The notes beneath the pieces were generated by a model that was not told where the DNA came from, did not search any database, and saw nothing but the letters and a program-made list of their open reading frames with translations. Position numbers and translations under genes: made by a program. DNA of 64,000 bases from Dendrobates tinctorius (lineage: Eukaryota), in contig NW_027361819.1 in assembly GCF_039654945.1 (NCBI RefSeq), forward strand, positions 6,448,001 through 6,512,000, written 5' to 3'. Of the stretch, positions 20,531 through 51,920 are shown piece after piece. Every line of letters starts with the position of its first letter. Positions within the stretch are counted from its first letter, which is position 1.

Positions 20531-22072
<1,542 letters not shown>

Positions 22073-26425: not shown

Positions 26426-29400
26426 TCAACGGAAGAATCGTCCCACAAGTGCAGAAAACCCGGTCTTCAGCAGAGCGACTGTTGTTGCTGCTACCTCCGT
26501 AGCCACCGTCTTCTCTACTGCTACCACCGCCGGCTGTGCCATGACGACAGTCCCCCTGGCTGCAGCTGCCCCAACCACCCCATATATCCCCAGACCGGCA
26601 GTGACGCCCAGCGTGACAGCATTCATTGTGAAACGAGTGGTGTAACCGGAGCAAAACTTCTCTTGCTCCTCCTGGAGATGGGACGCCAGCTCTACCTGCA
26701 GCTCGCGGTGATGAGACAGGTTGGGACCTAGGAGAGAGTCTTTGAATTTTGCTGTGAGTTCTGCCGACTTCTCCAAGACCAGGGTCCTCATGGTTGATGG
26801 TAGGAGGTGATACGGCTATGTAGAGAAGAGAGGAGCACAAGATGAGATTGATCACCAAGGTCTACTTTCCATGATCACAACCTCCAGGGTTAGGACCTTC
26901 ATGCCCGACAGCTCACAGGGCTTCTCCCAATCTTAGGTCTCCACCAGTGAAGCGTCTTTCGCAGTTTTAGTCGTGACTCACCTGATTCTTCAGGAATTCC
27001 TGGAGTTCATCTTTGATGCTTTCAAGGATCTTTTGGTTTTTGATGGCATAAAACATCTGCGAGGTGAAAAATGAATGACTGAGATACAGCGAGGAATGAT
27101 GGTGTTATAAAGACTGGTTAGTCGGACATAGATTGTGGTCTCCCCAACACTTTGACACATTACTCCCCAATATCAAGTAACGGACACATCCATAATGTGA
27201 AGAAAGATGATGGTTTCATTGGTTCACATTTCCTCCAATCTCCTCCTCTTCTCATTGGCTTCTTCCCCTTTCGCCAATATTCTCCTGTATTTTGTGTCCC
27301 CTCCTGTCAGTTGACTCCTTCTGCAGGTGGTCCTCCTCCTGTGGCCTTTCCTGCACATTTCCTCCCTGCCAAATCGCTCCTGTTACTCATACCTTTCCTC
27401 TAACTTCTAGCTCTCCCTTTCTTCTTCAAACCCTCCCTCCTAAGAGTCATCCTCCCGAGCTTCTTCCTACTCCTATGTCTCCACCTTCCCTTCTCGCAAT
27501 ATTCTCCCACTGCAGTATCTACCTTCTCTGGCCTCTCTCTCTATAGTCCCACCATCTGCAGCTCCTTGTCCAGGTATGACCATTTCTTCCACGTTTCCTC
27601 CTCTACCTACCTTGACCACTACATTCTCCCCATATCCTCCTCATTCAGCTCCTTCCTCTCTTCTCTCCATATTCTCTCTGTGCTCCTCTTTACTTCTGTG
27701 TCTCTTCTCACCCAATTCCTCCTTCTAAAGCTCCTCCCTTTTGTGGTTCTTCTGCCACATCTCCTGCTTCTGATGCTCCTCCCTTTCCTGTGACACCTCC
27801 ACCAAATCTCCTCCCCTGAAGCCCCTCGATCTCTCCTTTGGCTCTTCTGCTACAACTTCTCCCTCTGAATCTCCTCCTTCTCAAGCTCTTCCCTCTCTTG
27901 CGGATGCTCTACCCCATTTCCTCCCTTGGAAGCCCCTCTCTCTTCTGTAGCTCTTCCACCATATCTTCTCATCTGAAGTTCCACCCTCTCCCCTGGCTCT
28001 TCCACCACCTCGCCTCGCTCTCCTGTGGCTCTTCATCTAGATCTCCTTCCTCTGAGGTTTCTCTCTTCTGTAAGCTATCTTGTAATCTTGTAAAGATAAT
28101 TTCTTTATTTAAACCTCTGGGTGCACAGTACAGGAGAATTATGGACCCTAAGATCCTCTGATAATTAGCGGGTCATGGTGGGACATTTTTTTTTCTCAGC
28201 TTGTTCTAGAGGTAAGATGACATCACTCACCTCCATTGGGGTAGAGAAACCATAGTTCTGCTTCTCCAGAACATCAACAAAGACCTGAAGAAGAAACGCT
28301 CTTTAGAAGGTTAATCATAGTCATTTGGAAACACATAATAGTCAAGCAATAGAAATGGCTAAATAGCCGCTACATGACAGCAGTGCTGTTACTGCTCACC
28401 CTCCATGACACCCCTGCTGTCTATTAGTGCACAACCCCCACAATATCCCTACCCCTCAACCACAGCCCTGCCCCTCAGCCACACCACTGTTGACATAGCC
28501 CTGCCCCCTCAGCTACACCCCTGCTGATGTAGCCCTGCCCCCTCAGCCACTCCCCTGCTGATGTAGCCTTGCCCCTCAGCCACACCCCTGCTGACGTAGC
28601 CCTGCCCCTCAGCCACACCCCTGCTGACGTAGCCCTGCCCCTCAGCCACACCCCTGCTGACGTAGCCCTGCCCCTCAGCCACACCCCTGCTGACGTAGCC
28701 CTGCTCCCTCAGCTACACCCCTGCTGACATAGTCCTGCCCCTCAGCCACACCCCTGCTGACATAGCCCTGCCCCTCAGCCACACCCCTGCTGACATAGCC
28801 CTGCCCCTCAGCCACACCCCTGCTGACGTAGCCCTGCCTCTCAGCCACACCCCTGCTGACGTAGCCCTGCCCCTCAGCCACACCCCTGCTGACGTAGCCC
28901 TGCTCCCTCAACTACACCCCTGCTGACATAGTCCTGCCCCTCAGCCACACCCCTGCTGATGTAGCCTTGTCCATCAGCCACACCCCTGCTGACGTAGCCC
29001 TGCCCCTCAGCCACACCCCTGCTGACGTAGCCTTGTCCCTCAGCCACACCCCTGCTGACGTAGCCCTGCCCCTCAGCCACACCCCTGCTGACGTAGCCCT
29101 GCCCCTCAGCCACACCCATGCTGGCACCGTTTGTTCCCTTTGCCACTTTCCTTCTGTCGTGGCCTGCCTTTCTGCGTCACCCCTGCTGACGTAGCCCTGC
29201 CCCTCAGCCACACCCCTCCTGACGTAGCCCTGCCCCTCAGCCACACCCCTGCTGACGTAGCCCTGCCCCTCAGCAACACCCCTGCTGACATAGTCCTGAC
29301 CCTCAGCCACACCCATGCTGGTACCGTTTGTTCCCTTTGCCACTTTCCTTCTGTCGTGGCCTGCCTTTCTGCCTCACCCCTGCTGACGTAGCCCTGCCCC

Positions 29401-32400
29401 TCAGCCACACTCCTGCTGACATAGCCCTGCCCCTCAGCCACACCCCTGCTGACGTAGCCCTGCTCCCTCAGCTACACCCCTGCTGACGTAGCCCTGCTCC
29501 CTCAGCTACACCCCTGCTGACATAGTCCTGCCCCTCAGCCACACCCATGCTGGCACCGTTTGTTCCCTTTGCCACTTTCCTTCTGTCATGGCCTGCCTTT
29601 CCGCCTCACCCCTGCTGTCACCACCCTGCTCTCCATGATACCATGATGATAGTAATATGTTGGGTATAAATTATGGAGAAATCATAAAATTCCAGCTTTA
29701 CCTGTAACATGGAGGGGATGTGGCTGCAGGTCAGAACTTCTCCCCTCGCATCCATCTTAATCCGATGCCACACTCCCCGCACCACATCTGCCACGTACAT
29801 TCTCAGATTGTCCTGGAAATCCTCATCCATATCTGTCAGGAAGATGTTACAGGTGGTCGGTAAGGGGTGATCATTATACATGAAGAATAAAACTAACTCC
29901 AGGATCAGGAGATGATAAGACATAAAAAACATCACGTTACAGGCTAAAAACGTGACACCGTCCTCATGGTGTTACCTCCCCCAGCCCAGTGTTCATCCAC
30001 CATCCCGCACTCTGCAGAATGGAACTCCTCTAACACTGGACAGACTTCTGCAAAGTTTTTGATAGAAAAGCATCATGGCCTATAATTTGGGGCATTTCTC
30101 ACAAGCACAGATTTCTTATCTCACTCCATCATGGATCAGTTTCCAATCTCCCCAGTAAGGTCTCCATCACCCACCACGTTGAAGGACCTCACCTTGAAGT
30201 CTTCCTTGGCTCTCTCCAGTAATTCCTTTTCCTGGATGTGGCAGTAGGAAGCAGCGAGTGTGACTGCTCTTCAGACCCCATAAAACTTTGGGGTAACTAC
30301 GGCCTTTCTGGAGTTTCTAACATGGATATAAGAACATAGATAAATCAAATCTCATATTCCGAAAACAGAGAAGGAATATAAAAGTCTGCAGCACTGGGAT
30401 ATGGTGAGCTATATGGAGGTTGGCTTGGTCAGTAGTGGAGGCTGTCAGCTAAGATGGCTTCAGTCCTCATGGACCAAACGGCCTGAGCTGCCACCAAGGC
30501 CAATGCTCCGAAAAGTCCAATGTCACCATGGCAGATCTCATACTGAATAGACTGAGATGTTTGGAGGCTGCGTCCATGGATTTTCATACCTCAATTTCCC
30601 GACTGATATAAAACCGAGCTGCGTCTCTTCCACAATTGTCGGAGTCGTGCCAGTCTCTGATTAAAATGTCCAGGAACTGAATCAACGTACAGAAGATACA
30701 TGAAATGTCAGTGATAGGAAATATGGAGCTACAGAGAAAACAGAAACCTACATCCTATATCACCCCTTCCACCCACCACGATCATCCGCGGATTATAGGC
30801 CGGTCAGGGTCACCTACCTGTAACCGCTCAGAACCAAACTCCTCTCCCATGTTGAGGTACATCTGAAAGGACATTATCATCATTAGTCTGGAATGTTGCA
30901 CACAGAACACACTTGCACCCATCTTGAAGGACCTCAGAATTAATTAGTCATTTTATGGAGGACACAACCATTTGGAGGAACCCTCTCCTTACCTTATTCA
31001 CAATCAATCCCGAATGAGCCTTTTTTATGAAGGACAAAACTTATCAAAGCAGCTCCATTTCATGCCCATTCCAATGGACCTCACGATCAAACTGAGATAA
31101 GAAATTATTTTTGAGGACACAACCTATTGGAGTCTTCTATTCACCCCTGTCCTGACAGACCTCACAAAGTCTAAACTATGCCGGCCATTGTATAGGAAGA
31201 GACAACCTATCGGAGGAGCCCTCTCTTCACATTTATCCTGAAAGACCTCATAGTTATATAGACTGAAAAAAGACCTTGGTCCATCAAGGTCTCCGTTTCT
31301 CCACTAATTGTACATTTTGTCACTAATTTATCTATAACCCCCAATGTTATGTGTAGTGACTATTGAGGAAATCATCCAGCCCTTGTATAAAAGCTGCCAT
31401 AGTGTCGGCCATTACTACCTCTTGTGGTCGACATACCACAGTCTGACTGCTCCAACCGTAAAGAACCCTTTCCTATTTAGCTGGAGGGATCGCCTTTCTT
31501 CACCTCTTGATATAATCTGGAGTATATCGGACACATGTGACTCAATTCATTGAAAACCTTACAGTAGAAGGTCAAAGCCCAACTTTCCGTAAACATCCAA
31601 ATTTGGTCCAGTAATGATATTTTCACAGTTCTATCTGCCAGTAGATCCTGTTCCTCAGTTATCCAAACTATGGGTCCATTATCAACCGGACATCTCAAAC
31701 CAGTCCTGCAGCCTCGTAGAGTGACTAACATGTCGCTCCATATTATACTAAGGAGCAGTCATAAATGCCAGTTACATTCCTCTTTAGATCATCCACGTGG
31801 TCACAATTTCATGTCTGCCTCAAACGTATCTAGTCAGCTCTTGAGGAAGCATCAAGAACCGATCACATCCCTTCAAGAACTAGACCTGGATATCAGATTT
31901 CCAAAATATGATTTAAGACTTAGTATAAAATCTACTCATATTTTGAGGAACCAGCAAGTCCTCAGTTTCATTCCTATGTATTCGGAGCACCAAGAAATAA
32001 TCCAGTCACTATTCAGTCCTACATCCCAGTAGAAACCATTCAAGAACCCATACACTCCGATAGACCCTACAGAAACACGTCAAATCAGGACCTCTTCAGT
32101 ATAACACTCATCCCGATCCTAACGAGGTCCATCTGTATGGCTGAAGGACTTGTAGACCCGTGATCTACCAAATGTCCACACAACACTCACCTCCATGTAG
32201 TCTAGTTCTGTCTCCTTCAAACTTCCAGCCACATTGAAAACCTACAAGATTCGACAAATTAGCCGTTAAATCCCTCATTTTTGTTTTTTGAACGGACCCA
32301 ATAAGATCTATAGAAAATAGTAGACCCCTCACCAAATGAGAGCTGAGTAGCATGGACAATGCCGAAAGCTTAATGCAGCTCTCCCGGTCACCCTCGATAT

Positions 32401-35091
32401 CCAGTGAACCCTCTGTGTCCAAAACATAGACCACTACCTAGGGGAATAGATTTGAGTCAGCGAGGTACAGAACAAAGGAACATTGCCAATGATGTTATGA
32501 AGGAGTAGAACTCTCAGATGAGATGGACGCCATGCCAGAGATGTGAATCCTGATCTCACCTTCTCTCCCTTCTGGCCCACCATGAAAGGTCTGTTCCAGA
32601 TCCAGATCCCCTTTGTAGTGCTGTCGATGCCACATTTCCATTCGAAACCTTGGAGGGGTTCATCATTTGCTCCAAGACTGAAGTCCTCGCCCTTCTCCTA
32701 CAAGAAGTTACAAAGGAGTCTGGTAACATCAAGCGGAGCTATAGGATCCCTCAGGTTAGAGGAGCAAATAAAGGGTCTTATCTCATTGGCGAGCCACACT
32801 GAAAATCCTCAACCGTCAGTCGCTGTATGAGAGCTACCGAGACCCCTATTCAGATCAAGGCCCTAGAATGAAGCTGACTGGTGTGTCACAGGTCGTGGGA
32901 GCCTCACAGAGAATTGAGCATCACTTGACATCCCCAGATACCCTCGGGCATCCAGTAATATCCATGGAAATCACCGTACAATGGCGCCAGGTTATCCCAG
33001 CACATCATATAAACATTTGTAGTGACTCGCGCACTATAAGTTTATGCCCCCCTTGGCCTCCGCTCACCTGACTCTCCAAGGCCCTCAAGACATAATTCAT
33101 CAGGAACGACTTCCCGCGCCGCTTTTCTCCGATGACGCAGAGCAGATAGACAGGATAAGTGGACAGATGGCTGTTCATGAAGCAGTTGTAGACCACCGAC
33201 TCATCCAGGTGTAAGCGGCCATTGCCATCCGTCCACACCAGCTGTAACGGGTAACCCTGCTCCGGAGGTTGCAGACATTCCTGTAGAATAACAGATGCTG
33301 GTAACGCCAAGATCTGATTTTTTCTGGATTGATTAGCCTGCTGGTCACATTGTTACCTGCTCTCTGGTTTTGTCCTGGATTCCCTTTTGGATCTTGTCGA
33401 TGAGGTTCATCAGACGATAGTCGGGTGCAATCTGATTTCGGGGACACTGTGTCCTGCACTCGGGGCAGAGGTAACCGGCTGGGTGTGGGGTGCTCCAGTG
33501 TGTGGTAATACAGTTTCGGCAGAAGGTGTGCCCGCAGGCGATGGACACCGGATTCTGCAGGTCATCAAGGCACACTGAGCAGGTGATGTCCTCTGCTAGG
33601 ACCTGGAAGCCAACGGCACCATCTGAAGGTAGCGGGGGGTCATTACTAAAGAAAACAGAGCACCAATTCAACTCGAGTCACTACAGGCAGTTGGCTACAC
33701 GGTTACGCTGGTGATTGAACGGGACAGGGTGGCTATGCCAGAGATCGAGTGGGGAAGGGGGCATCGCCAGCAATCGAGCCGGACAGGGCACCTACGCCAG
33801 CGATCGAGTCGAGCAGGGGGGGCTACGTCAGCAATCGAGCGGGACAGGGCAGCTATGCCAGCGATTTAGTGGCTTTTCACAGCGATGGAGCAGGACAGGG
33901 CAGCTATGCCAACGATCGAGTCGGGCAGGGGGGGCTACGTCAGCAATCGAGTGGGACAGGGCAGCTATGCCAGTGATTAAGTCAGGCAGGGGGCATCGCC
34001 AGCAGTCGAGCGGGACAGGGCAGCTATGCCAGTGATTAAGTCAGGCAGGGGGCATCGCCAGCAGTCGAGCGGGACAGGGCAGCTATGCCAGTGATTGAGT
34101 CGGGCAGGGGGCATCGCCAGCAATTGAGCGGTACAGGGCAGCTACGCCAGCGATCGAGTCGAGCAGGGGGGGCTATGTCAGCAATCGAGTGGGACAGGGC
34201 AGCTATGCCAGCGATTGAGTGGCTTTTCACAGCGATGGAGCAGGACAGGGCAGCTACGCCAACGATCGAGTCAAGCAGGGGGGCTACGTCAGCGATCGAG
34301 CGGGACAGGGCAGTTATGCCAGCGATCGAGCGGGACAGGGCAGTTATGCCAGCGATCGAGCGGGACAGGGCAGTTATGCCAGCGATCGAGCGGGACAGGG
34401 CAGTTATGCCAGCGATCGAGCGGGACAGGGCAGTTATGACCAGCGATCGAGCGGGACAGGGCAGTTATGCCAGCGATCGAGCGGGACAGGGCAGTTATGA
34501 CCAGCGATCGAGCGGGACAGGGCAGTTATGCCAGCGATCGAGCGGGACAGGGCAGCTATGCCAGTGATTGAGCGGGACAGGGCAGTTATGCCAGCGATCG
34601 AGCGGGACAGGGCAGTTATGCCAGCGATCGAGTGGGACAGGGCAGTTATGCCAGCGATCGAGTGGCTTTTCCCAGCGATGGAGTTGGACATGGCGGCTAT
34701 GCTGTCGATAGAGTGGGATAGTGGAACTATGCAGGGCATGAGCAGGCGGTGCAGCTATGCTGGCGGCAGCAAAAGTTAGTGCGGCTATGCTTGCGATGGA
34801 GCAGAAGAGTGCGTCTTCTCAGGCGGCAGGGCAGGGCGGCTATGCTGGCGTTGGAGCTGACGCGACTCTCCTACAACCCGGACTACATATTTCAGTGCTG
34901 TCGTCGGTGTACAGACTGTCACTGTGGCCCCCGGCCTCTCACCTCACAGTCTCGGCGCTCTCGCTGGGTCTGGCCGCTCGCTCTCGCCGTGGTCTCTTTC
35001 TCACCCTCTTCCTCTGGGGCTCAGTCTGTGGTTGCGCCGGCCTGAGTGAGGTTTGCGGCCTCTCTGCCGCCCTGTGCCTCCTGGCCTCCAT
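26426..35091 (-). CDS. RNF112-like: RNF112-like RING finger / GBP-atlastin-type GTPase, paralogue B (~616 aa, 13 coding exons)
   Basis: Exons: 35091-34943, 33645-33357, 33280-33068, 32697-32560, 32437-32333, 32241-32191, 30862-30818, 30676-30590, 30316-30193, 29832-29702, 28284-28231, 27056-26982, 26815-26426. All introns are GT-AG and the total of 1851 nt stays in frame. Motifs: C3HC4 RING CSVC…CGHTFCRNC…CPEC, G1 GEKRRGKS, G2 STTKGIW, G3 DTEG, G4 IRDW, FLLPHPG, and a hydrophobic C-terminus. The first coding exon is the least certain. Confidence 0.9.
28440..29617. repeat. 33-bp minisatellite (CCCCTCAGCCACACCCCTGCTGACGTAGCCCTG)n with a ~60-bp spacer repeated three times; intronic in gene B
   Basis: The 11-aa periodicity is GVAEGQGYVSR. 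The spacer CATGCTGGCACCGTTTGTTCCC… occurs at ~29117, 29314 and 29546. Confidence 0.9.
31249..31510 (-). mobile_element. Short 3' fragment of a second CR1 family, intronic in gene B
   Basis: CATAGTTATATAGACTGAAAAAAGAC…GGTCCATCAAG is a CR1-type 3' end. The minus strand reads RKGFFTVGAVRLW, like the CR1 ORF2 C-terminus (compare RKNFLTVRVINEWN in the full element). Confidence 0.65.
33712..34700. repeat. 30-bp minisatellite (CCAGCGATCGAGCGGGACAGGGCAGTTATG)n in the first coding intron of gene B
   Basis: The 10-aa periodicity is MPAIERDRAV. Confidence 0.9.
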
Positions 35092-35123
35092 GTTTGTTTG
35101 TCTGCCTCCAGTGACAGTCACCG

Positions 35124-35450
35124 CTCCTCCTCCTCCTCCTCCTCCTCCTTCTCCTTCTCCTTCTCCTCCTCCTCCTCCTCCTCTGTGCAGCTGTTCTTCC
35201 AGTTCCTCACTACACCCCACCTGCCTCTGATGCAGCAGAGCTGAGCTGCTCCTTTGTTTCAGTTGTGGAATCTGAACTGTTGTGAGCAGTCTGGAGACAA
35301 TAAGGAACATGAAATCCTCCCAAGATGTCCGGACGGTGGCGGGGCGGGAGCGCTGCGCCTTGGATGGCGCTCAGTGTGTATGGAAGCAATTAGTGACTGT
35401 AATGGGCCGGCGCCGCGTCTTCTGCGCATCGTGCCCGATCACGGAGTGCA
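35124..35450 (-). promoter_or_regulatory. Putative 5' UTR/promoter of gene B: (CCT)n microsatellite, GC boxes and a CpG-rich patch
   Basis: (CCT/CTT)n spans 35124-35182. GGCGGGGCGGG is at ~35338. A CpG cluster at 35330-35445 lies just upstream of the first coding exon. Confidence 0.5.
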
Positions 35451-36188
35451 AAGTCCTGTAACTTTCTCGTAGACTCTGGGGCGCTGTCATTATTGCATTT
35501 TCTCTTTTTTTTTTCTTAGTTTGTGACTTTTTTTTCGCCCGTTTTTCATTTGCGCCTTGTTCCTTGTTTTCGATGGACGCTGTTGGGTTTGGGATTTCCA
35601 GAAGTTCGCGGTTGTGAATGATAAAAAAAGTCAGAGAAGTTTTGCAGTTTGCGAATGTTGTGACATTGTGGAAGAAGGCGTCACATTACTGATTACGGAC
35701 AACGCGCACGGAACCTTCGCTTTTTTTTGTCACTTTGTCGTCTGCTGCTCACTGAGGAGTCTCTGCCGAATCTATCAAAATGGCGCAGGCGGCTCAATAT
35801 GGTGACAAGTAAAAAAAAAAAGTTCAAAAACCTCCTTAAGGCTTTGTTCACACGTTGCGTTTTTTTTCCGCCGTTTTACCAAATAAACCGCATCAGAAGC
35901 ACTTAAAAGCTTACCATTCGTTTTAATGAATTCCGCACTTTTTGTGCAGATGTATGTGTCTTTACCGCGAAAAAAAACGCTTTGCGGTAACAGGCTCATT
36001 CATTTGTCGGAAAATTCCGCATTTCTAGCTATTTTCTATGTGACTGGGGACGCGCAAAAAACGCACGTTTTCTGGGAAGGAGTCCAGTTTTCATGCAGAA
36101 ATTTTCTGCATACGCCGGCATTATTCTGTCTGTAAATATTTTACTGCTTTACACAACAAAAATCCTGTCCTTCAGGAAATCGCTCCGG

Positions 36189-36660
36189 GGAGGACTCGAG
36201 CACTGGAGGACTGGACGTCTGGAAGACTGGAGGACTAGAGCACTGGAGGTTTGGAAGACTGGAGGACTAGAGCACTGGAGGTCTGGAAGACTGGAGGACT
36301 AGAGCACTGGAGGTCTGGAAGACTGGAGGAAATGAGGACTGGAGGACTCGAGCACTGGAGGACTGGACGTCTGGAAGACTGGAGGACTAGAGCACTGGAG
36401 GTCTGGAAGACTGGAGGAAATGAGGACTGGAAGACTGGAGGACTAGAGCACTAGAGGTCTGGAAGACTGGAGGACTAGAGCACTGGAGGTCTGGAAGACT
36501 GGAGGACTAGAGCACTGGAGGTCTGGAAGACTGGAGGAAATGAGGACTGGAGGACTAGAGCACTGGAGGTCTGGAAGACTGGAGGAAATGAGGACTGGAG
36601 GACTAGAGCACTGGAGGTCTGGAAGACTGGAAGTCTAGGAGACTGGAGGACAGGAGGACA
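36189..36660. repeat. 32-bp minisatellite (GGAGGACTAGAGCACTGGAGGTCTGGAAGACT)n
   Basis: The period is 32 (36261 to 36293). Confidence 0.88.
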
Positions 36661-36709
36661 AGTTTTTCTTATTTTGTGTAAAAAGTATAAACCTGGAGCG
36701 AGACTTTAA

Positions 36710-40375: not shown

Positions 40376-40464
40376 AAGGAGACATATAGAGATACATAAG
40401 CCAGTGTATAACTGGGTGAATAAGACACAGGATTTGGTGCTCTGTATCAGAACATGTATAAACT

Positions 40465-41074: not shown

Positions 41075-44000
41075 TCACTCCGCTTTGGGCACCAGCTTTT
41101 GGGTGTCTTCAGGCGTTGAGCCATTGGTATCACCTTGGTCATCGGGCGTCTGATCCTTCTTCTTCTTCTCTATATGCCCAATAATCCCCCCCACACCTCC
41201 TCCAACTCCTGTCCCAATAGCCCCTCCGACGGACCCTCCGACTGCCCCGCCGATTATGATAGCCTCCGTAGCCAGGACCGTTCCAGCCACGGCTGCTCCC
41301 ACGATGCCTCCTGCCAGGGTGAGGATCCCTCCACCCACCGCACACCCGATCCCCACAGCGCACTTTGTGAAGCGCTTGGAGTATTCGGAGCAGAATTTCT
41401 CCACTTCTTGGTCCAGTAGAGCCTTCATCTCATAGGTCAGATTTATCCTCGCCGCGTCATTGCTGCCCCTCAGATTCTGCTCGTACTCCTGAAGGAGCCG
41501 TAAGGCCTCCTCGCTGACGACCTCCCTCATAGTAGAGGGCCTAACCTTCAACACCTTGATAGGAGAAGACGGGCTTGGAGCCTGAGGAGGACACGAGAAG
41601 ATACGTTACATTTCATGGTCTATGACTACAGCCTGGTATGGACAGATGGACGAGGCTGGCGATGATCTATAACCATGCCGCCATGGCCGATCGCTCCGGA
41701 TACAGAACGTCCCCACATGGGACGAGGGATCTTACCTTATTTGCAACAAAATCTTGGAATATTTTCACCGTGATCTTCAAGTTTTTGTGGTTTTCGAGGG
41801 CATAGAACATCTGGAGGAAGAGAACGAGGCGTTAATGTGATGACCGGAGACGAGGAGCCTCATCCCATCCTGTATGTAGGATACCGGGGTGAGAACTAAC
41901 GATGGAGGAGAAACGATACGGCCATGGGAACATGGAGGGGAATCATCCTGAGGGATTACATCCTATGTGTCCGACTGGATCTTATGTGTCCGACTGGATC
42001 TTATGTGTCCGACTGGATCTTATGTGTCCGACTGGATCTTATGTGTCCGACTGGATCTTATGTGTCCGACTGGATCTTATGTGTCCGACTGGATCTTATG
42101 TGTCCGACTGGATCTTATGTGTCCGACTGGATCTTATGTGTCCGACTGGATCTTATGTGTCCGACTGGATCTTATGTGTCCGACTGGATCTTATGTGTCC
42201 GACTGGATCTTATGTGTCCGACTGGATCTTATGTGTCCGACTGGATCTTATGTGTCCGACTGGATCTTATGTGTCCGACTGGATCTTATGTGTCCGACTG
42301 GATCTTATGTGTCCGACTGGATCTTATGTTTCTTGGAATGTTTCAGAACTATGTATCCTGAGTGTTTCCTGTATGTGAATGACATGGGACTGGACATCGG
42401 GGAGAGGCCGGGCCCCAGTCGGCCACGATTCATGCAGATTAGGGGTCACCGTGATTTTGTGGATTGTAGCGCGCTGCCTCTAGTGGACGACATAGGACAT
42501 GACACAATTACCTCTATAGGGGAAGCAAAGCTGAAGTTTTCTTGCTGCAAAGTACTGACGAAATCCTGAAAAATAAACAACACAGGAGAGAGAAGGGTTA
42601 ACAAAGAAAAAAAAGAAAAAGACATATATATAAAAAGTACATAGTGGCTGAGAAGGTGGACATAATGTCAGCTGAGCATCAGTAGATGCAGACATGGCCG
42701 GAATGGAACGGGAGAAAAAAACAGTTCAAGCGCAGTGAAATGGGGAGTCGGGGGGGATTCTGGTTTTTGGGGTTTTGTTTCTAGGCTTTCACTAATAATG
42801 TGAATTTTCTTCGTAGTCATTTTCAGTCCTTTATTGCCCGTGATAACCAGCTGTGTGCGGGCAGAAGAGGACGCGGTTACTTGGATTACAGGGGAGGATT
42901 TTTTTTTTATAATTTTGGGGGAGGACGGGAAGGCAAAAATGTGACCCTCAGCGGCATTAATTACGGGCACTCAGGGCGCCATCACTGAGTCAGGGGGCCC
43001 ATGCGTGCCTTGCCCGGGTGCCGGTAGCACACAATTTGACACTCTTCTTTTCCAATTTTTCTCCTTGCTGCTCGTTCTGCTCTCGGCATTAAAGCCTCCT
43101 CTTCAACCTTCAGTCCGGACACCCGTCGCTCATATTCTTCCTCTTTTTTCATCCACAAAAAACCGTACTGATGCCACGTCACGACCCCAATATAGCACTT
43201 GAGTCATTTAATGACCCTCTTAAAGGGATTACTTACAGAAAAGTCAGGGTTCCTCGCACCGTGCCATCGTTAGCTGATAAGAAGGAATTATTAACCCTTT
43301 TCTTGGTAATGGGTCTTATCAATTTACAAGAAATGATGAGCGAGGAGACTCTACACCGACAGGTCCCTAGCGCGGACCATAGCGCTACTGTAGCAGCGGA
43401 AAATGCCATATAACGCCCCGAGATAATCGTCAGAAGATCTGTGATAACATTTCATGTCCGACCTTCAGCATTCGGCCCAGCTGGCCGCACGTGATCCTCT
43501 CTCCATGGACATCGGTTTTACGGTGGAGCCAAACGTCTTCCATGACGCTGGAGATGTACGTGGTCAGGTGGCTCCTGAAGTCATCGTCCATGTCTGTGAA
43601 GAGAGGCAATAATCATCACACTGGAATATACAGGTATATTCTACCGGGTGGGAGCAGTCCTAGGGTCTCTTACCCTCCCGGCTTGCAGGTAATTTGGGGT
43701 GAGCAGTGTGTGGCGGGTGGAGGGGAAATGTAACACTGGATGGCGCCCATATCACGGTGGAGCAATGTTTCCATTGGTGGTGTCCCTCATCGCTCCGACT
43801 GATCGGTCTGTAGAGGATAGTCCCTCTAACTCGAGTCTTACCCGATAGCCGCCCTTCACTGGATCTCAGGAATGTTTTCCCCGGATGAGGCAGGAGGAAG
43901 CCGCTCACGGACGGACTGCGCAGAGTCTCCAGCACACGGCGGTATGTCGCGCTCTTCCGCAGCTTCTACAAAAACAGAGTGTAACTTTCCATCCTCAGTG

Positions 44001-47000
44001 TCAGGTTCGTACACCTCCTGGGATGGCCGATACCCACCCAAGATTTTATTCACGTAGCCATGTGTTGGAGACTTGCAGCTCCCCGAGTGTCACCAAAGTT
44101 TGGTGAAAAAACATCCAAATACAGACCGGCGCAGTTTGCAAAGGGCATCAGAAAAAAACCTCTTCTCAACAATTAGTGACCAATGACAACAAAAGACCTT
44201 TTGTAAATTGTGATAATCTGGAAGTCGGCACAAATTATGGCTCCGATGTGGTCACAGCCGGACAGTCCTAAATACAATAGGAGCTCTGTCATACCTCCGT
44301 CTCGTGCTCCAAGTAGGACTTTGCCGCTTCTCGACCACAGTCGTCGGGGTTATGCCAATCACGAACCAGAATATTCAGGTGCTAAAGTGTAGAAGACATC
44401 AAAGATGGAGAGATGCAACCACTGGGAGATGCAGGAAGTCAAAGGACGATGGGGACACTAAAAAGGCGGAGAAAGTATCTGCTCTGCTCCTAATCTTCAG
44501 GAAGGTGACCCCCACTGGTTTTCCATTGCTTATTACTGGAGCTCAGGTGGAGAGGACAAGCACTCAAGCTCACAATGGCTGACCGTAGTTGTGGTCCTTC
44601 ATCTACACATCACCAGAGCGGACATAGGAGATGCCATAAACTCAACCAGAGAAAAGAAGACAGCTACAGTAATGTGCCAAGAAGTAGTGGTCACGATTTT
44701 GGTAAAATAGCCTGAAGGTTGCTGGGAAGAAGCTGAAGACATTGACCAATGATGTCATCAAGATGCCAGAAATGAACCCTATCAAAAACTGCACTCTAGA
44801 GATCCTGCAAAACATTCCCTACAGGATTGGTAAGAATGTGTGGAGAGAGCGACGCCGAGAGGAGGTCACCTGTAGATACTGTAGACAGAAGGATTCCCCT
44901 GTGAGCTCCGACACGTGGAGATACATCTGAAAAGACACAAATACATCTCGATCGATCCAGTCCATCTCGTAGAAATGAAACTCAAGGTTACATGGGCAGA
45001 AGCCTCTTCATTCCACTGATACATTGTAGTGACAATGTAACGATGGTCCGTGATACATTCAAGGACTGACATCGAGGAGAACAACAACAGATTTTTGTAG
45101 AGATGTCCTCGACTTCCGTACCTCCAGATAATCCAGCTCTGTTGTTTTCAAGCTTGCATTAATGTTGAAGATCTGAGGACACAAACAAACGTCACATGAG
45201 AAGATGTTCATGAAGAGGATGGACGCCCCATCACCAAGACGTTACATGAAATTACATCAACCCCCACTAGAGATCGCGTGAGTGACACAAGTATAGTAAT
45301 CCTGCCATTGACAAGGGCGGTGGGCTACATCAATATCTAGGGGGTCTATACAAACTGCAGAGTGCAGCCACTCATTTATCTTTTATGCGGTTTGATTAGT
45401 GTGCCAAAACAAAAATATATATTGTGGTCATACATGTGTATTACACTCTCCAAAATCTCTTGAGGGAGTAAAGAGGTGTGTGGGCATGGGTATTCAGGGC
45501 TCCGCGAAGACCTCACATACCAGGTAGGAGCTGAGGAGCATGGACAAGGCGGAGAGCTTCACACAGGTCTCCCTATCACCTTCGATGTCCAGTGAACCCT
45601 CTGTGTCCAGGACAAACACGGCCATCTGTACAGAGAAGAAAGAAGGGTCACATCATAACCAAGGACCATGACGTCAATCGTGAAATCCAGTCTGTGCTTC
45701 TGTAAATGACATGTGATCGAGTAGCTGCAATCAGATCTGACATTCATCCATGATTTACAGAGACCGGAGATCGAAGCGATAATCGTTACATTGATCTTAC
45801 CGGCGGCTCACGATAAAGAGTGCGAGGACAGACCTGATGAGAGACATACATTGTGCCCTTTACCTTTTCTCCGTTCCTCTCCAGGATAAAGGGTCTACTC
45901 CACAACCATATCCCTTTGGTGAGACTGTCTGTCCCGGATCGCCACTCAAAACCGTGGAGGGGCTCGTCCTGTTCCCCTAGGCGGATCGGCTGACCCTTCT
46001 CCTATACAGAAAAAATAAATTTGTGAAATCATTCTGAAACTATTTTCTCAATACCAAGGATGGATCCCCATCAATAACATATCTCCAAATGCAAGTCCCC
46101 CTCCCAGGGTAAGCATGTGCCGAACTCCTCTATAAAAACAAGTAACTTTGGGGTGGAGCAGATACAAGCATGAGGCCCCCCTAACCCTTGACTTGAGGGG
46201 TGATGATATGATCCCATTTAGTCCCTGTGACATTGGATGTTGCCCTTTATCCTGCAGGTTATGACTCCTCACCAGGCTGTAAAGTGCTCTCAGAATATAG
46301 TTCATCAGGCTGGACTTTCCTCTTCTCTTCTCTCCAATCACACAGATAAGGCACAGGGGGTAATCGGAGATCTTACGGTCCAAAAAGCAGCCATCAAGAA
46401 CGGATTCATCCAGCCCCATTTTGTTGCAAGCATTGGTATAGACCAGCTGGACGGCACGTGGAGGAGCCTAGGAGGACATTAGTCATAGTCAATATTTACG
46501 CAGATCATTGCATCTCATATCTATGAAGTAGACAGATAGGAATGTCTAATGGTCTGCCATCTGTGATTACCCACAGGCTTCTCCTCCCCCATATCAAATA
46601 AACTTCCATGTATAACATTGTCACCGGTGTATTAACTGAAGACTGGCATGGCCCAAGTACCCATGGCGTTCCCTACTATTCTCTAACAACCCAAATGATA
46701 CAACAAAGGTATGGGGCCATGATAAAGGTTTGTGTCATACATCTTTATGAATGTGTGGAATTTGCACCAGATAAAACTGTTTCTCTGTATTTGGCATTAA
46801 ATTATTATCACTTTAAAGGCTCTAAAAACCACTTTTACCTACTAGTTTGGACTGTTATTTTTGACAGCTAAACCATTGGTATGAATCTTCAAGTATTAAC
46901 CCATTCATTGTCTGAACAGTGGGCGTGGTTGAAATACCCATGGCGGTCCCTACAGTTTTTCAATAGCCAACATAATACTCTTATCTGTGTTATGATAAGT

Positions 47001-47696
47001 TAACATAAGTCTGTGCTGTAAATCTCAGCTAAGCGTAGACTTTGTACAAGCTATAACCATTGTTACTCAGCGTTCATTATTAAGTTATAGAAGGGCACAC
47101 ATGCTACAGAACGTGCAACTTTCTTACTTTCACCTACCAGTCTGGACTGCTCTTCTTTGACAACCAGCTGAACCTTTGACACCAGTTGCTGCAGGCGGTA
47201 GGCAGGTATGAGCTGATCTCTCGGACAGACTTTCCTGCATTCTGGACAGCGATACCCAAAGGGTTGTGGGGTGGACCAGTAGGAAGAGATACAGGGTTTA
47301 CAAAAATTGTGCCCGCAGGTGATAGATACCGGGTCACGGAGCTCATGGAGACAAATGGAGCATGTGATATCGTCTTTTAGTTTGGAGAAATGTGCAGACC
47401 CTTCATTTGGCATGGCTGCCCTAATTCACAGAGACATCCGGCAGAAAGAAAAGGAAAGTTACAAGTCTCATCATGATAAGTTATGTGAAGTCAGGGAGTA
47501 AAGTAAAAGCAAAGTAGACGAAAACAGCAAAGCTGTGACGGAGCATGGATCAGACGATGCTGGGGATAAGTACAAACATGGACGACAATATGATAACGAG
47601 TCACATGACCTGCGCCTGGAATAAAAGGAGCTAAAGACTATAAACACCACAGGAAAAGTAAGGGATGACTTACGGCTTAGAGCGGCTGCTTCCCAT
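41075..47696 (-). CDS. RNF112-like: RNF112-like RING finger / GBP-atlastin-type GTPase, paralogue A (~609 aa, 13 coding exons)
   Basis: Coding exons: 47696-47674, 47420-47138, 46467-46273, 46001-45864, 45625-45521, 45172-45122, 44926-44870, 44381-44295, 43965-43842, 43593-43463, 42565-42512, 41810-41736, 41581-41075. All introns are GT-AG, the total of 1830 nt stays in frame, and phases are identical to gene B. Motifs: RING CSIC…CGHNFCKPC…CPEC, GEKRRGKS, SLTKGIW, DTEG, VRDW, FLLPHPG, and the Gly-rich tail AVGGGILTLAGGIVGAAVAG typical of RNF112. Confidence 0.93.
41963..42328. repeat. Perfect 19-bp minisatellite (CTTATGTGTCCGACTGGAT)x~19, intronic in gene A
   Basis: The copies are invariant and give a 19-aa periodicity in all three frames. 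Confidence 0.97.
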
Positions 47697-48565
47697 GTGG
47701 CGAGTGCAGGGCGCCCTGATATCTATGGAGCCTGCGGGACAGAGGTCGATGACTGACATAGGAGGAGAAAAAGCAAACATATCAGACATGGAAACACCCT
47801 GACGGAGTTAACCCCTGAGCTACTGACACCGCGCAGAAAAGGCGAAGTACAGGAAGATCAACAGCCCTGACTGCACAGTGTATGCGCTCCATCACCTAGA
47901 TTATGTCCATACACTGTATGCCCAGTTATAGCCACACATCGTACGTGTTCCATAGCGTCACAAAAGTTACAAACATGACCATAAATGTATAAAGATACAT
48001 GCATTATTATTACAGCAAAACATACAATACACAGGATAACAGAGGGGACATCAAGAAAACTCCCACAGATGACAGAAAGGATGTAAATCCGGCACCAATG
48101 ACAACACACACAGCGGATGCGGGGATGCGAAGGTGGATGCCAAGGAACAGCAGAAAGGGCTATGAAAAATCATCTCACAAGAAGATCGACAGCAGTGTAA
48201 AGTAACCATGATGCATAGCGGGTATCACCTATAAGCACCCGACAAGCGTGGCTTCTTCCAAAGGGGCAAAATGCATGTCAGGTGCAGACAGGTGATACCT
48301 GAGTCATTCCTTTTGGCTGTTTGCACATGTTGTGTTTTTGCTCTCTATTACTAGCACCAGGTCTTGATGTCAGCTCTGTGTTTGGACAATTCACAGTTGT
48401 CATCAACCCCAAGACCCATTACTCCGATTGTCACTGTACCAAGGCAGGAGGAGTCGGGCGAAGTGCCAGAATTGACGAATTGCACATGACGCTCCAATTC
48501 TGTGTAGGCTGCGGACTGCTCTAATTAGGCTGGGAAGGGGCCATTATCCATGGACTATCCCAGAC

Positions 48566-51219
48566 TGTGTATCCGTACACCCCCGTGTCTCCATCGTATC
48601 CGTACACCCCCCCCGTGTCTCCATCGTATCCGTACAACCCCCCCGTGTCCCCATCGTATCCCAACACCCCCGTGTCCCCATCGTATCCGTACACCCCCCC
48701 GTGTCCCCATCGTATCCGTACACCCCCCCGTGCCTCCATCGTATCCGTACACCCCCCCGTGTCTCCATCGTATCCGTACACCCCCCCCGTGTCCCCATCG
48801 TATCCGTACACCCCCCCGTGTCCCCATCGTATCCGTACACCCCCCGTGTCTCCATCGTATCCGTACACCCCCCGTGTCTCCATCGTATCCGTACACCCCC
48901 CCCGTGTCCCCATCGTATCCGTACACCCCCCCCGTGTCCCCATCGTATCCGTACACCCCCCGTGTCTCCATCGTATCCGTACACCCCCCGTGTCTCCATC
49001 GTATCCGTACACCCCCCCCCGTGTCCCCATCGTATCCGTACACCCCCCGTGTCTCCATCGTATCCGTACACCCCCCGTGTCTCCATCGTATCCGTACACC
49101 CCCCCGTGTCCCCATCGTATCCGTACACCCCCCCGTGTCTCCATCGTATCCGTACACCCCCCCCGTGTCCCCATCGTATCCGTACACCCCCCCCCCGTGT
49201 CCCCATCGTATCCGTACACCCCCCGTGTCCCCATCGTATCCGTACACCCCCCGTGTCTCCATCGTATCCGTACATCCCCCCCGTGTCCCCATCGTATCCG
49301 TACACCCCCCGTGTCCCCATCGTATCCGTACACCCCCCGTGTCCCCATCGTATCCGTACACCCCCCGTGTCCCCATCGTATCCGTACACCCCCCGTGTCC
49401 CCATCGTATCCGTACACCCCCCGTGTCTCCATCGTATCCGTACACCCCCCGTGTCCCCATCGTATCCGTACACCCCCCGTGTCCCCATCGTATCCGTACA
49501 CCCCCCGTGTCTCCATCGTATCCGTACATCCCCCCCGTGTCCCCATCGTATCCGTACACCCCCCGTGTCCCCATCGTATCCGTACACCCCCCGTGTCCCC
49601 ATCGTATCCGTACACCCCCCGTGTCCCCATCGTATCCGTACACCCCCCGTGTCCCCATCGTATCCGTACACCCCCCGTGTCTCCATCGTATCCGTACACC
49701 CCCCGTGTCCCCATCGTATCCGTACACCCCCCGTGTCCCCATCGTATCCGTACAACCCCCCCCCCGTGTCTCCATCGTATCCGTACACCCCCCCCCCCGT
49801 GTCTCCATCGTATCCGTACACCCCCCCCCCCGTGTCCCCATCGTATCCGTACACCCCCCGTGTCTCCATCGTATCCGTACACCCCCCCGTGTCTCCATCG
49901 TATCCGTACACCCCCCCCGTGTCCCCATCGTATCCGTACACCCCCCCGTGTCTCCATCGTATCCGTACACCCCCCCCGTGTCCCCATCGTATCCGTACAC
50001 CCCCCCCCCCCGTGTCCCCATCGTATCCGTACACCCCCCGTGTCCCCATCGTATCCGTACACCCCCCGTGTCTCCATCGTATCCGTACATCCCCGTGTCC
50101 CCATCGTATCCGTACACCCCCCCCCCGTGTCTCCATCGTATCCGTACACCCCCCCCCCCGTGTCTCCATCGTATCCGTACACCCCCCCCCCGTGTCCCCA
50201 TCGTATCCGTACATCCCCCGTGTCTCCATCGTATCCGTACCCCCCCCCGTGTCTCCATCGTATCCGTACACCCCCCCCCCCCGTGTCTCCATCGTATCCG
50301 TACACCCCCCCCGTGTCTCCATCGTATCCGTACACCCCCCCCCCCCCGTGTCCCCATCGTATCCGTACATCCCCGTGTCCCCATCGTATCCGTACACCCC
50401 CCCCCCCGTGTCCCCATCGTATCCGTACATCCCCCGTGTCTCCATCGTATCCGTACACCCCCCCGTGTCTCCATCGTATCCGTACACCCCCCCCGCGTGT
50501 CTCCATCGTATCCGTACACCCCCCCCCCGTGTCCCCATCGTATCCGTACATCCCCGAGTCCCCATCGTATCCGTACACCCCCCCCCCGTGTCCCCATCGT
50601 ATCCGTACACCCCCCCCCCCCCCGTGTCCCCATCGTATCCGTACATCCCCCGTGTCCCCATCGTATCCGTACATCCCCCGTGTCTCCATCGTATCCGTAC
50701 ATCCCCCGTGTCTCCATCGTATCCGTACACCCCCCCGTGTCTCCATCGTATCCGTACACCCCCCCCCCCGTGTCCCCATCGTATCCGTACACCCCCCCCC
50801 CCCCGTGTCCCCATCGTATCCGTACATCCCCCGTGTCTCCATCGTATCCGTACACCCCCCCGTGTCCCCATCGTATCCGTACACCCCCCCCCCCGTGTCC
50901 CCATCGTATCCGTACACCCCCCCCCCCCCCGTGTCCCCATCGTATCCGTACATCCCCCGTGTCTCCATCGTATCCGTACACCCCCCCGTGTCCCCATCGT
51001 ATCCGTACACCCCCCCGTGTCTCCATCGTATCCGTACACCCCCCCGTGTCTCCATCGTATCCGTACACCCCCCCCGTGTCTCCATCGTATCCGTACACCC
51101 CCCGTGTCCCCATCGTATCCGTACACCCCCCACCGTGTCCCCGTCGTATCCGTACACCCCCCACCGTGTCCCCGTCGTATCCGTACACCCCCGTGTCCCC
51201 GTCGTATCCGTACACCCCC
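48566..51219. repeat. C-rich ~28-35-bp minisatellite (CCATCGTATCCGTACA-Cn-GTGTCY)n in the 5' intron of gene A
   Basis: It has a constant core with variable poly-C. There are no stops in any of the six frames, which explains the huge spurious ORFs. Confidence 0.95.
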
Positions 51220-51781
51220 GGTCAGTGCTCCGCAGCCCCCCGTTCCCCCCCCCGGTCAGTGCTCCGCAGCCCCCCGGTCAGTGCTCCGCAGCCCCCCGTT
51301 CCCCCCCCCGGTCAGTGCTCCGCAGCCCCCCGGTCAGTGCTCCGCAGCCCCCCGGTCCCCCGCCCGGTCAGTGCTCCGCAGCCCCCCGGTCAGTGCTCCG
51401 CAGCCCCCCGGTCCCCCGCCCGGTCAGTGCTCCGCAGCCCCCCGGTCAGTGCTCCGCAGCCCCCCGTTCCCCCCCCCCCGGTCAGTGCTCCGCAGCCCCC
51501 CGTTCCCCCCCCCGGTCAGTGCTCCGCAGCCCCCCGGTCAGTGCTCCGCAGCCCCCCGTTCCCCCCCCCCGGTCAGTGCTCCGCAGCCCCCCGGTCAGTG
51601 CTCCGCAGCCCCCCGTTCCCCCCCCCGGTCAGTGCTCCGCAGCCCCCCGGTCAGTGCTCCGCAGCCCCCCGTTCCCCCCCCCGGTCAGTGCTCCGCAGCC
51701 CCCCGGTCCCCCCCCCGGTCAGTGCTCCGCAGCCCCCCGTTCCCCCCCCCGGTCAGTGCTCCGCAGCCCCCCGTTCCCCCC
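51219..51781. repeat. C-rich ~23/35-bp minisatellite (GGTCAGTGCTCCGCAGCCCCCC[GTT-Cn])n
   Basis: It is directly visible and abuts the putative exon-1 splice donor. Confidence 0.93.
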
Positions 51782-51791
51782 GTGTCTGTAC

Positions 51792-51835
51792 CTCTCCTCT
51801 CCTCCCTTCTCTTCTCTTTCTCCTCAGTTTGCAGG
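51792..51835 (-). other. Putative non-coding exon 1 of gene A
   Basis: A purine-rich segment ends in the donor GAG|GTACAG at 51792/51791, immediately downstream of the promoter motifs. It could splice to the acceptor cccgcag|G at 47731. The TSS is approximate. Confidence 0.55.
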
Positions 51836-51920
51836 AAGCCGGAACAGAAAGTGAAAGTGCTGGCGCCGCCCCCCGCGCTGTGATTGGCGGAGACTTGTGC
51901 AGGAGGCGGAGCTTTCCCTG
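51836..51920 (-). promoter_or_regulatory. Gene A promoter: ISRE/IRF-E, GC box, CCAAT box, NF-kB-like site
   Basis: GAAAGTGAAAGT at 51847-51858; CCGCCC at 51866-51871; ATTGG (CCAAT on the minus strand) at 51883-51887; GGGAAAGCTCC (minus strand) at 51908-51918. Confidence 0.7.

Follow-up and report, generated by a model that had tools for sequence, protein, structure and literature searches.

Introduction

The literature regards RNF112 (neurolastin/ZNF179) as one brain-specific, dynamin-like E3 ligase; to our knowledge, its structures come only from a Xenopus protein. The structures and mechanism of that protein have been described (PDB 9jju-9jjx; PMC12012479). Mammalian RNF112 is single-copy and brain-enriched, the human and mouse proteins lack a P-loop arginine carried by the frog protein, and engineered RNF112 can substitute for the ER fusogen in yeast (PMC12012479).

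Here we describe two neighboring genes, G1 and G2, in a 64-kb window (the whole stretch of DNA analyzed, 64,000 nucleotides) of the Dendrobates tinctorius genome. In our view this interval is likely to be the RNF112 locus of frogs, carrying two tandem co-orthologs of the single amniote RNF112, with G2 probably under IRF or interferon control. Both genes are ordinary representatives of a family that was known before, and NCBI already annotates them as ‘RING finger protein 112-like’. A literature search found no paper describing the tandem frog pair, its interferon-stimulated response element (ISRE) or the MG-start findings reported below.

Gene models and transcript support

Self-comparison and spliced models give two complete, intact minus-strand genes (Table 1). 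As the preliminary description had stated, each has 13 coding exons (35091 to 26426 in G1, 47696 to 41075 in G2) with the same intron phases (2,0,0,0,0,0,0,0,1,0,0,0), and the two are clearly diverged (49.9% protein identity); G2 has a further, non-coding first exon, for a total of 14. All introns are GT-AG. The G2 product is identical to XP_073403624.1 at 609/609 residues, and that of G1 to residues 74-689 of XP_073403621.1 at 616/616 (both D. tinctorius).

RNA contigs (four runs, two studies) support ten junctions of G2, those between E11 and E1; coverage by these contigs stops at E11, so that the E12/E11 and E13/E12 junctions lie outside the covered stretch. The junction of the exon encoding the MG start (47674|47420) is present in three of the four runs. 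Exon 1 is joined to this MG exon over a 4,039-nt, satellite-filled intron with its acceptor AG at 47754-47753: the loose end of an RNA contig at 47754 matches 51794-51823 in reverse complement, and the NCBI isoform X1 protein crosses the same junction. For G1, transcript evidence consists of the NCBI model. In models without the MG exon, G2 starts at an internal ATG at 47413, within the RING exon.

It is very improbable that either gene is a decaying or unexpressed duplicate. Reading frames and splice sites are intact and catalytic and zinc-binding residues complete in both, both have orthologs across frogs and a low dN/dS (see below), and for G2 the idea is contradicted by spliced transcripts that are abundant in four RNA runs.

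Table 1. Features of the RNF112 locus (positions in the window; exons listed from high to low coordinates)
Feature	Position	Strand	Remarks
G1, clade-I RNF112 paralog	26426..35091	minus	616 aa from MEARR; XP_073403621.1 minus first 73 residues
G1 coding exons 1-7	35091-34943, 33645-33357, 33280-33068, 32697-32560, 32437-32333, 32241-32191, 30862-30818	minus	spliced model
G1 coding exons 8-13	30676-30590, 30316-30193, 29832-29702, 28284-28231, 27056-26982, 26815-26426	minus	spliced model
G1 first coding exon	34943..35091	minus	K/R-rich, NLS-like; ends phase 2
G1 RING exon	33357..33645	minus	C3HC4, residues 72-113
G1 last exon	26426..26815	minus	middle-domain end, one hydrophobic segment (~553-572), amphipathic tail ending GRFFR, stop
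57-bp satellite, 47 copies	37689..40381		fills most of 6-kb G2-G1 spacer
G2, clade-II RNF112 paralog	41075..51843	minus	609 aa; XP_073403624.1 ‘RNF112-like isoform X2’
G2 exons 1-2	non-coding exon 1 ends 51792, RNA up to ~51843; exon 2 47752-47674 (ATG 47696)	minus	
G2 exons 3-8	47420-47138, 46467-46273, 46001-45864, 45625-45521, 45172-45122, 44926-44870	minus	spliced model
G2 exons 9-14	44381-44295, 43965-43842, 43593-43463, 42565-42512, 41810-41736, 41581-41075	minus	spliced model
G2 exon 2 (MG exon)	47674..47752	minus	5′UTR and 23 coding nt, MGSSRSKP, myristoylation-type start; ends phase 2
G2 RING exon	47138..47420	minus	C3HC4, residues 28-69
G2 last exon	41075..41581	minus	middle-domain end, long Gly/Ala/Val-rich hydrophobic stretch (~515-556), KKKK-acidic tail, stop
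28-bp and 56-bp G/C-skewed satellites	48569..51739		within G2 intron 1
G2 non-coding first exon, observed part	51792..51843	minus	donor GT 51791-51790; RNA and NCBI isoform X1
IRF-E/ISRE core	51847..51858	minus	GAAAGTGAAAGT on + strand, ACTTTCACTTTC in gene orientation
CCAAT box (51883-51887) and GC box (51866-51874)	51866..51887	minus	directly upstream of ISRE

Protein architecture

Pfam assigns to both proteins a zf-C3HC4_4 RING (8e-15 for the G1 exon and 2e-12 for the G2 exon, all eight ligands retained) and a GBP N-terminal domain (PF02263, E 3e-32). The best PDB matches of the RING are TRIM25, TRIM21 and TRIM5 (1e-12 to 1e-10). The GTPase motifs GEKRRGKS, including its P-loop arginine finger, T(T)KGIW, DTEG and (I/L)(L/V)RD occur in both, with motifs G1-G4 intact. 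The alignment of G2 with 9jju spans residues 3-399 of the latter, covering the GTPase and middle domains, with an E-value of 1e-118; atlastins come next (1e-42), whereas GBP chains give a partial match of ~90 residues at ~1e-7. The G1 exon is 72% identical to the solved RNF112 protein across the first 64 residues. By sequence, the complete RNF112 layout is present in G1 as well as G2: C3HC4 RING, linker helix, atlastin-like GTPase, helical middle domain and C-terminal hydrophobic anchor, the last being predicted from Kyte-Doolittle windows of at least 1.6 (residues 553-572 in G1, 515-556 in G2). The proposal of a TRIM-type RING fused to a GBP/atlastin-type GTPase therefore stands for the RING and for the atlastin likeness; the GTPase is atlastin/RNF112-like and not GBP-like.

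The termini of the two proteins differ. MGSSRSKP at the start of G2 fits the myristoylation pattern PS00008, G-{EDRKHPFYW}-x(2)-[STAGCN]-{P}, and the G1 start does not; the first coding exon of G1 has 15 K+R in 49 aa, including RKRVRKRPRR. A CaaX motif is absent from both G1 (ending in GRFFR) and G2 (ending in LVPKAE), and Pfam returns RING models but no B-box in either. Myristoylation, membrane anchoring, and GTPase and E3 activities would be expected from these features.

One alternative reading is that at least G2 is an interferon-induced cell-autonomous effector, a frog-specific fusion that combines GBP-like coating of pathogen or vacuole membranes with TRIM-like ubiquitylation. The TRIM-like RING, the lipid-anchor-type N-terminus of G2 and its hydrophobic tail are consistent with such a role. 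However, the match of the GTPase to atlastin/RNF112 exceeds that to GBP by 35 orders of magnitude, and neither protein has a B-box, coiled coil or CaaX. Because B-box, coiled coil and PRY-SPRY domain are all missing, G1 and G2 are not TRIM proteins.

Duplication, orthology and selection

In our tree, frog genes form one clade (100/100) containing clades I (with G1) and II (with G2), each supported at 100, and salamanders, amniotes, lungfish and coelacanth fall outside. The two frog clades together are thus the counterpart of RNF112 in those groups, and G1 and G2 are co-orthologs. Tandem pairs occur in Xenopus, Eleutherodactylus and Pyxicephalus, and the order in X. laevis (trypsin-like gene, then clade II, then clade I) is repeated in E. 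coqui, where the two genes lie 13.8 kb apart, and in Pyxicephalus. Tree and gene order place the duplication in the frog stem, before crown frogs, with the copies in tandem since, and not in this lineage as the preliminary description had supposed. G1 is the ortholog of X. laevis rnf112.L, and G2 is equally a co-ortholog of amniote RNF112.

An MG start is present in RNF112 of coelacanth, lungfish, lizards and turtles, and throughout clade-I frog genes a K/R-rich first exon stands in for the MG exon. The myristoylation-type start noted earlier on one gene, with its pattern fit and its junction in RNA, is real, but it is ancestral to RNF112 rather than an innovation, with G1 as the derived copy. 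Its occurrence in single-copy amniote RNF112 also counts against the immune-effector reading.

Clade II has gained extra lineage-specific copies, in keeping with the wider expansion envisaged earlier, and its copy number turns over, unlike that of clade I. In Bufo, Mixophyes, Xenopus and Pyxicephalus there are RING-less derivatives and birth-and-death expansion within clade II, and turtles have a large RNF112-like expansion; both observations favor the immune-effector reading, as does the catalytic arginine kept in frogs and lost from mammalian neuronal RNF112. Against it, gene-wide dN/dS relative to E. coqui is ~0.18 for G1 and for G2, which points to purifying selection on both and gives no arms-race signal at the gene-wide level.

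Purifying selection and a one-to-one tandem pair that is stable among frogs would also suit a second alternative, in which G1 and G2 are subfunctionalized housekeeping or neuronal duplicates and the promoter 12-mer described below is a constitutive or tissue-type IRF site (e.g. IRF1/2/6/8) or another promoter/5′UTR element unrelated to interferon. The brain enrichment of mammalian RNF112 and its endosome, mitochondrial and synapse biology (PMC12012479) point the same way, whereas copy-number turnover in clade II and not in clade I does not.

The G2 promoter

The promoter of G2 appears to be TATA-less, of a CCAAT/GC/IRF-E type. The sequence GAAAGTGAAAGT, a textbook IRF-E/ISRE core, lies 55 nt upstream of the exon 1 donor (exon end 51792), so the ISRE promoter reported earlier for one gene is real. 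The core pattern GAAANNGAAAST has two matches in the 64-kb window against 0.14 expected. The second (47448-47459) forms the polypyrimidine tract at the acceptor of the RING exon and was rejected as an ISRE. For the G1 start, no ISRE was found nearby.

The exact 12-mer occurs in gene orientation in four of four neobatrachians (Dendrobates, Eleutherodactylus, Nanorana and Pyxicephalus), each time within a conserved, aligned CCAAT-ISRE-donor module upstream of the ortholog, against a chance of ~6e-4 per species for one strand in 10 kb. Among five aligned promoter copies the CCAAT box does not vary, and the invariant 12-mer sits between flanks with only about 63-65% identity. At three pipid loci (two in X. 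laevis, one in Hymenochirus), no ISRE was found in the 10 kb preceding the clade-II gene, so its presence may be confined to Neobatrachia. For isoform X1, NCBI places the start at an in-frame ATG close to 51945, on the upstream side of the ISRE; should this transcript be real, exon 1 would include the ISRE, and the glycine of the MG start would not be at the N-terminus of isoform X1.

An invariant IRF/ISRE core at its promoter makes regulation of G2 by IRF or interferon signaling probable, and we lean modestly towards it. For the housekeeping or neuronal alternative, the position of the 12-mer at or within the first exon is favorable; its match to the textbook core, its invariance between diverged flanks and the lack of any RE1/NRSE site in the window are not, and we regard that alternative as possible but doubtful. 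The conserved element likewise favors the immune-effector reading, which we nevertheless consider unlikely, as no ISRE turned up in the upstream regions of the pipid loci and a literature search found no paper tying RNF112 to interferon in any vertebrate.

Proposed mechanism and significance

For the reading we prefer, an RNF112 pair with a probably IRF-regulated G2, a mechanism can be carried over by analogy from the solved Xenopus protein, the ortholog of G1. A protein of this type would sit on endomembranes, its GTPase domains dimerizing during GTP hydrolysis, and the middle domain would be released and swing, which could tether or remodel membranes; the RING would ubiquitylate its own protein and substrates independently of the GTPase. 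The upstream copy, G2, retains the ancestral form: its start is of the myristoylation type, MGxxxS/K, and its hydrophobic tail is long and rich in glycine. In the downstream copy, G1, the MG exon has been swapped for the K/R-rich NLS-like exon and the tail shortened. In a speculative extension, which we think rather unlikely, clade-II proteins would be IRF/interferon-induced, N-myristoylated, membrane-remodeling E3-GTPases, a further interferon-inducible dynamin-like family of frogs and perhaps turtles, and the brain-enriched, arginine-less mammalian RNF112 would be a specialized remnant of an immune- or stress-responsive gene.

The crystallized Xenopus RNF112 is one of two ancient frog paralogs, the derived copy that has lost the ancestral myristoylation-type start, which bears on carrying results from its structure over to mammalian RNF112. 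Its sister paralog has an interferon-type promoter element, invariant among the neobatrachian frogs examined, and frogs and turtles both show repeated expansion of the family. Paralog identity, conserved promoter element and copy-number change together make an immune- or stress-inducible side of RNF112 a direct, testable question.

Comparison with known systems

RNF112 shares with G1 and G2 its RING, atlastin-like GTPase, helical middle domain and hydrophobic C-terminus. The X. laevis gene rnf112.L (LOC432253; PDB 9jju) is the direct ortholog of G1, at 60% identity, and its protein aligns end to end with that of G2; Xenopus RNF112 has the G1-G4 motifs and P-loop arginine common to both. Like G1 and unlike G2, the crystallized protein has a derived K/R-rich N-terminus. 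Instead of one gene, frogs have two ancient tandem co-orthologs, one of them, G2, with an MG start and an IRF-E/ISRE promoter. TRIM25, TRIM21 and TRIM5 have the same RING subtype (zf-C3HC4_4), but G1 and G2 lack the B-box, coiled coil and PRY-SPRY domain. Interferon-inducible GBPs, which are lipid-anchored large GTPases, share PF02263 with both proteins and an ISRE-type promoter element with G2, yet they match weakly and partially, and G1 and G2 have neither the GBP C-terminal helical domain nor a CaaX. Atlastins (ATL1-3) have the next-closest GTPase and middle domains and the same logic of membrane-anchored, GTP-dependent dimerization, but they are ER-resident, lack a RING and have two clear transmembrane helices, while RNF112 has GTPase-middle domain contacts of its own kind.

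Gene models and annotation

A protein-level self-comparison resolved ten matching minus-strand blocks between the two halves of the interval. Guided by full-length relatives, themselves located through a search with the P-loop exon, we built spliced models for two tandem RNF112 paralogues, the downstream G1 and the upstream G2. All introns of both genes are GT-AG, and the two share the phase series 2,0,0,0,0,0,0,0,1,0,0,0 at a protein identity of 49.9%. For both proteins Pfam reports a TRIM-type C3HC4 RING and a GBP-type GTPase domain; the zinc ligands are complete, and the GTPase motifs G1 to G4 (GEKRRGKS, TKGIW, DTEG, RD) are all there. The preliminary description of two intact genes joining a RING to a large GTPase was therefore correct at the positions given.

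Both genes match NCBI proteins and are thus already in the automatic annotation. XP_073403624.1 (‘RING finger protein 112-like isoform X2’, Dendrobates tinctorius) is identical to G2 over 609/609 residues, while residues 74-689 of XP_073403621.1, on the same contig, are identical to G1 over 616/616. The extra 73 residues of XP_073403621.1 come from an upstream ATG used by no orthologue. The longer NCBI models of both genes start at in-frame upstream ATGs, and their extensions are shared by no orthologue; use of the isoform X1 ATG would abolish the N-terminal glycine of G2. A second G1-type D. tinctorius protein (P0287, XP_073429614.1; partial, 564 aa, 94.5% identity to G1) lies on another contig (72.8 Mb), pointing to a recent additional copy, or else a divergent haplotype, in another part of the assembly.

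Genes, promoter features and repeats of the window
Feature	Position	Strand	Remarks
G1	35091-26426	-	13 coding exons, 616 aa; spliced model
G2	47696-41075	-	13 coding exons, 609 aa; spliced model
Upstream ATG, longer G1 model	35310	-	689 aa
Upstream ATG, G2 isoform X1	51939-51945		679 aa
End of G2 non-coding first exon	51792		
Donor GT of G2 first exon	51791-51790		
Acceptor AG of G2 first intron	47754-47753		
IRF-E/ISRE 12-mer	51847-51858		
Second core-pattern match	47448		rejected as ISRE
CR1/L2-like LINE	14026-18144	-	long open frames; between 31-bp satellite arrays
LINE ORF1	16936-18144		402 aa; upstream ORF, esterase-like C-terminus
LINE endonuclease and reverse-transcriptase ORF	14750-16756		668 aa
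Continuation of that ORF	14026-14721		231 aa
Tc1/mariner-type transposase ORF	20655-21626	-	323 aa; apparently intact
Intronic repeat array	28464-29552		
Intronic repeat array	33713-34662		
Intronic repeat array	41960-42329		19-bp repeat at 41964-42329
57-bp satellite	37689-40381		47 copies, 93% alike
28-bp satellite	48569-51219		
39/117-bp satellite	52085-64000		at least 12 kb; GC-rich (~68%), strongly G-skewed

Family assignment

The P-loop exon of G1 strongly matches one solved structure, 9jju (‘LOC432253 protein’), which is a truncated Xenopus laevis RNF112 (Zhong et al., PNAS 2025; PMC12012479). Full-length G2 aligns end to end with the 9jju chain (E 1e-118); atlastins come next at ~1e-42, and GBPs reach ~1e-7 over only ~90 residues. 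The best matches of the RING are TRIM25, TRIM21 and TRIM5. On these alignments, G1 and G2 belong to the RNF112 family, with a GTPase that is atlastin-like and not GBP-like. The proposed fusion of a TRIM-type RING to a GBP/atlastin-type GTPase thus keeps its RING and its atlastin side, but not its GBP side. Published work already covers the family and its architecture as well as a frog structure.

Origin of the tandem pair

In database searches, practically all sequenced frogs had ‘RNF112-like’ proteins, with several on one chromosome in many cases. Two trees, one built quickly from 76 proteins and one built carefully from 43, agree: the frog proteins form a single clade (support 100/100), whose two branches are clade I (100/100) and clade II (100/99), with salamander, amniote, lungfish and coelacanth RNF112 outside. 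Clade I includes G1, X. laevis rnf112.L (the crystallised protein), Bombina and Ascaphus; clade II includes G2, Bombina, Discoglossus, pelobatoids and pipids. This topology places the duplication in the frog stem, not in the present lineage as had been supposed, and makes G1 and G2 co-orthologues of amniote RNF112. With a length of 0.50, the clade I stem exceeds the clade II stem (0.28). Clade I is essentially single-copy, and extra lineage-specific copies and RING-less derivatives belong to clade II.

The tandem order of the pair is conserved. Eleutherodactylus coqui has its clade I gene 13.8 kb downstream of clade II on the same strand; X. laevis has, in this order, a trypsin-like gene, the clade II gene and a 612-aa protein equal in length to rnf112.L; Pyxicephalus has a RING-less copy followed by clade II and then a clade-I-type gene; and in Nanorana clade II adjoins a trypsin-like gene. 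Two clade-II-type RING exons lie 22 kb apart in Pyxicephalus (L007, 16543-39325), which seem to mark two tandem clade II genes merged in one annotated model. Long RING-less RNF112-like derivatives were also seen in Xenopus and Hyla, and turtles carry a large RNF112-like expansion: several species have at least 10 genes per genome, and some of these genes are fused to additional C-terminal domains.

The termini of the two proteins differ. G2 begins with MGSSRSK, a match to the Prosite myristoylation pattern; such a start had been noted for one gene. RNF112 of coelacanth, lungfish, salamander, lizard and turtle likewise begins with MG(N/S)xxxK, as do most clade II frog proteins, which makes this start ancestral to RNF112 and not an innovation. 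Every clade I protein has a K/R-rich first exon instead (RKRVRKRPRR in G1), so that the novelty is on the G1 side, where the first exon was exchanged at an identical phase-2 junction. The C-termini diverge in the same direction: G2 carries a long hydrophobic stretch rich in Gly/Ala/Val together with a charged tail, and G1 a single short hydrophobic segment, its sequence ending in GRFFR.

Selection was estimated by pairwise Nei-Gojobori and YN00 comparison with the E. coqui orthologues only. The values are nearly the same for G2 (dN 0.134, dS 0.758, dN/dS 0.18; 549 codons) and G1 (dN 0.135, dS 0.734, dN/dS 0.18; limited to 332 mappable codons). Moderate purifying selection acts on both genes, and neither of these pairwise comparisons shows a gene-wide sign of an arms race.

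A conserved promoter element in clade II

Beside the non-coding first exon of G2 stands GAAAGTGAAAGT, an IRF-E/ISRE core. It precedes the exon-1 donor by 55 nt, and a GC box and a CCAAT box lie immediately upstream of it. In the 64 kb window, where 0.14 matches to the core pattern GAAANNGAAAST would be expected, there are two; the second corresponds to the polypyrimidine tract at the acceptor of the RING exon. The identical 12-mer occurs, in gene orientation, upstream of the clade II gene in E. coqui (L001:603), Nanorana parkeri (L002:8550) and Pyxicephalus adspersus (L007:8088 and 9686, a duplicated module). It is invariant in promoter alignments together with the CCAAT box, within surroundings of 63-65% identity, and is followed ~45-55 nt downstream by a GGTGAG donor in the three other species and by Dendrobates’ own donor at the corresponding position. 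By an arithmetic estimate, the chance of this 12-mer on one strand of 10 kb is ~6e-4 per species. We regard this conservation as the decisive evidence on the ISRE, and the earlier attribution of an ISRE promoter to one gene is borne out.

The CCAAT-ISRE-exon-1 module of Pyxicephalus (L007, 8025-9765) is duplicated 1.6 kb apart. In the pipids X. laevis (L004, L005) and Hymenochirus (L006), the 10 kb upstream of the clade II gene showed no ISRE. Despite this, intron 3 of the X. laevis clade II gene holds the exact 12-mer (L005:15774), perhaps as an IRF site within the intron or else by chance. Near a G1-type gene, the sole IRF-E match found is in E. coqui (L003:918 = L001:23141); it sits in the spacer, ~9 kb upstream of the G1 orthologue and 4.7 kb downstream of that of G2. 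A search of the window for RE1/NRSE sites as a sign of neuronal control, allowing up to two mismatches, gave none.

RNA contigs from four runs in two studies were compared with 42335-47800, the E12/E11 and E13/E12 junctions being outside this stretch. Ten G2 junctions, E11 to E1, appear exactly as modelled. Three of the four runs show the micro-exon junction 47674|47420, and the fourth run’s contig is unspliced through that intron. Past 47754, the contig of run X2 equals the reverse complement of 51794-51823, which defines the non-coding first exon; the NCBI isoform X1 protein spans the same splice junction. G2 is spliced, and present at appreciable depth in all four runs, and these data indicate its transcription from the island bearing the conserved IRF-E.

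With satellites on both sides, one starting ~200 bp upstream, the G2 promoter is a unique island of ~300 bp. Another satellite, of 57 bp, fills the spacer between G2 and G1, and repeat arrays occupy introns of both genes. A degenerate CTCF core pattern had no match in the window, the 57-bp satellite included, although the pattern was simplified and the evidence is weak; CCCCCTAGTGGTGGC in the 57-bp unit deviates from the CTCF consensus at conserved positions.

Proposed function and relation to known systems

Judged by the Xenopus structure paper (PMC12012479), the G1 and G2 proteins would be membrane-anchored dynamin-like GTPases. Dimerisation of their GTPase domains at the transition state would release the middle domain, and the proteins may be able to remodel membranes; the RING would carry out (auto)ubiquitylation independently of the GTPase. 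From its promoter, we lean slightly towards G2 being responsive to IRF or interferon signalling. Direct action of G2 on pathogen compartments, part of the immune-effector role first proposed, is speculative and rather unlikely.

Our literature search found no paper on frog RNF112 paralogues or their frog-wide tandem duplication, on the exon swap in the crystallised paralogue, on RNF112 expansions in frogs or turtles, or linking RNF112 to interferon. G1 and G2 are real, ordinary members of a known family, with one interesting and testable regulatory feature. They resemble TRIM proteins in their RING but have no B-box in Pfam. GBPs match them only weakly, and neither C-terminus has the CaaX box. 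Whereas the P-loop arginine required for hydrolysis is absent in human and mouse RNF112 (PMC12012479), both frog genes retain it.
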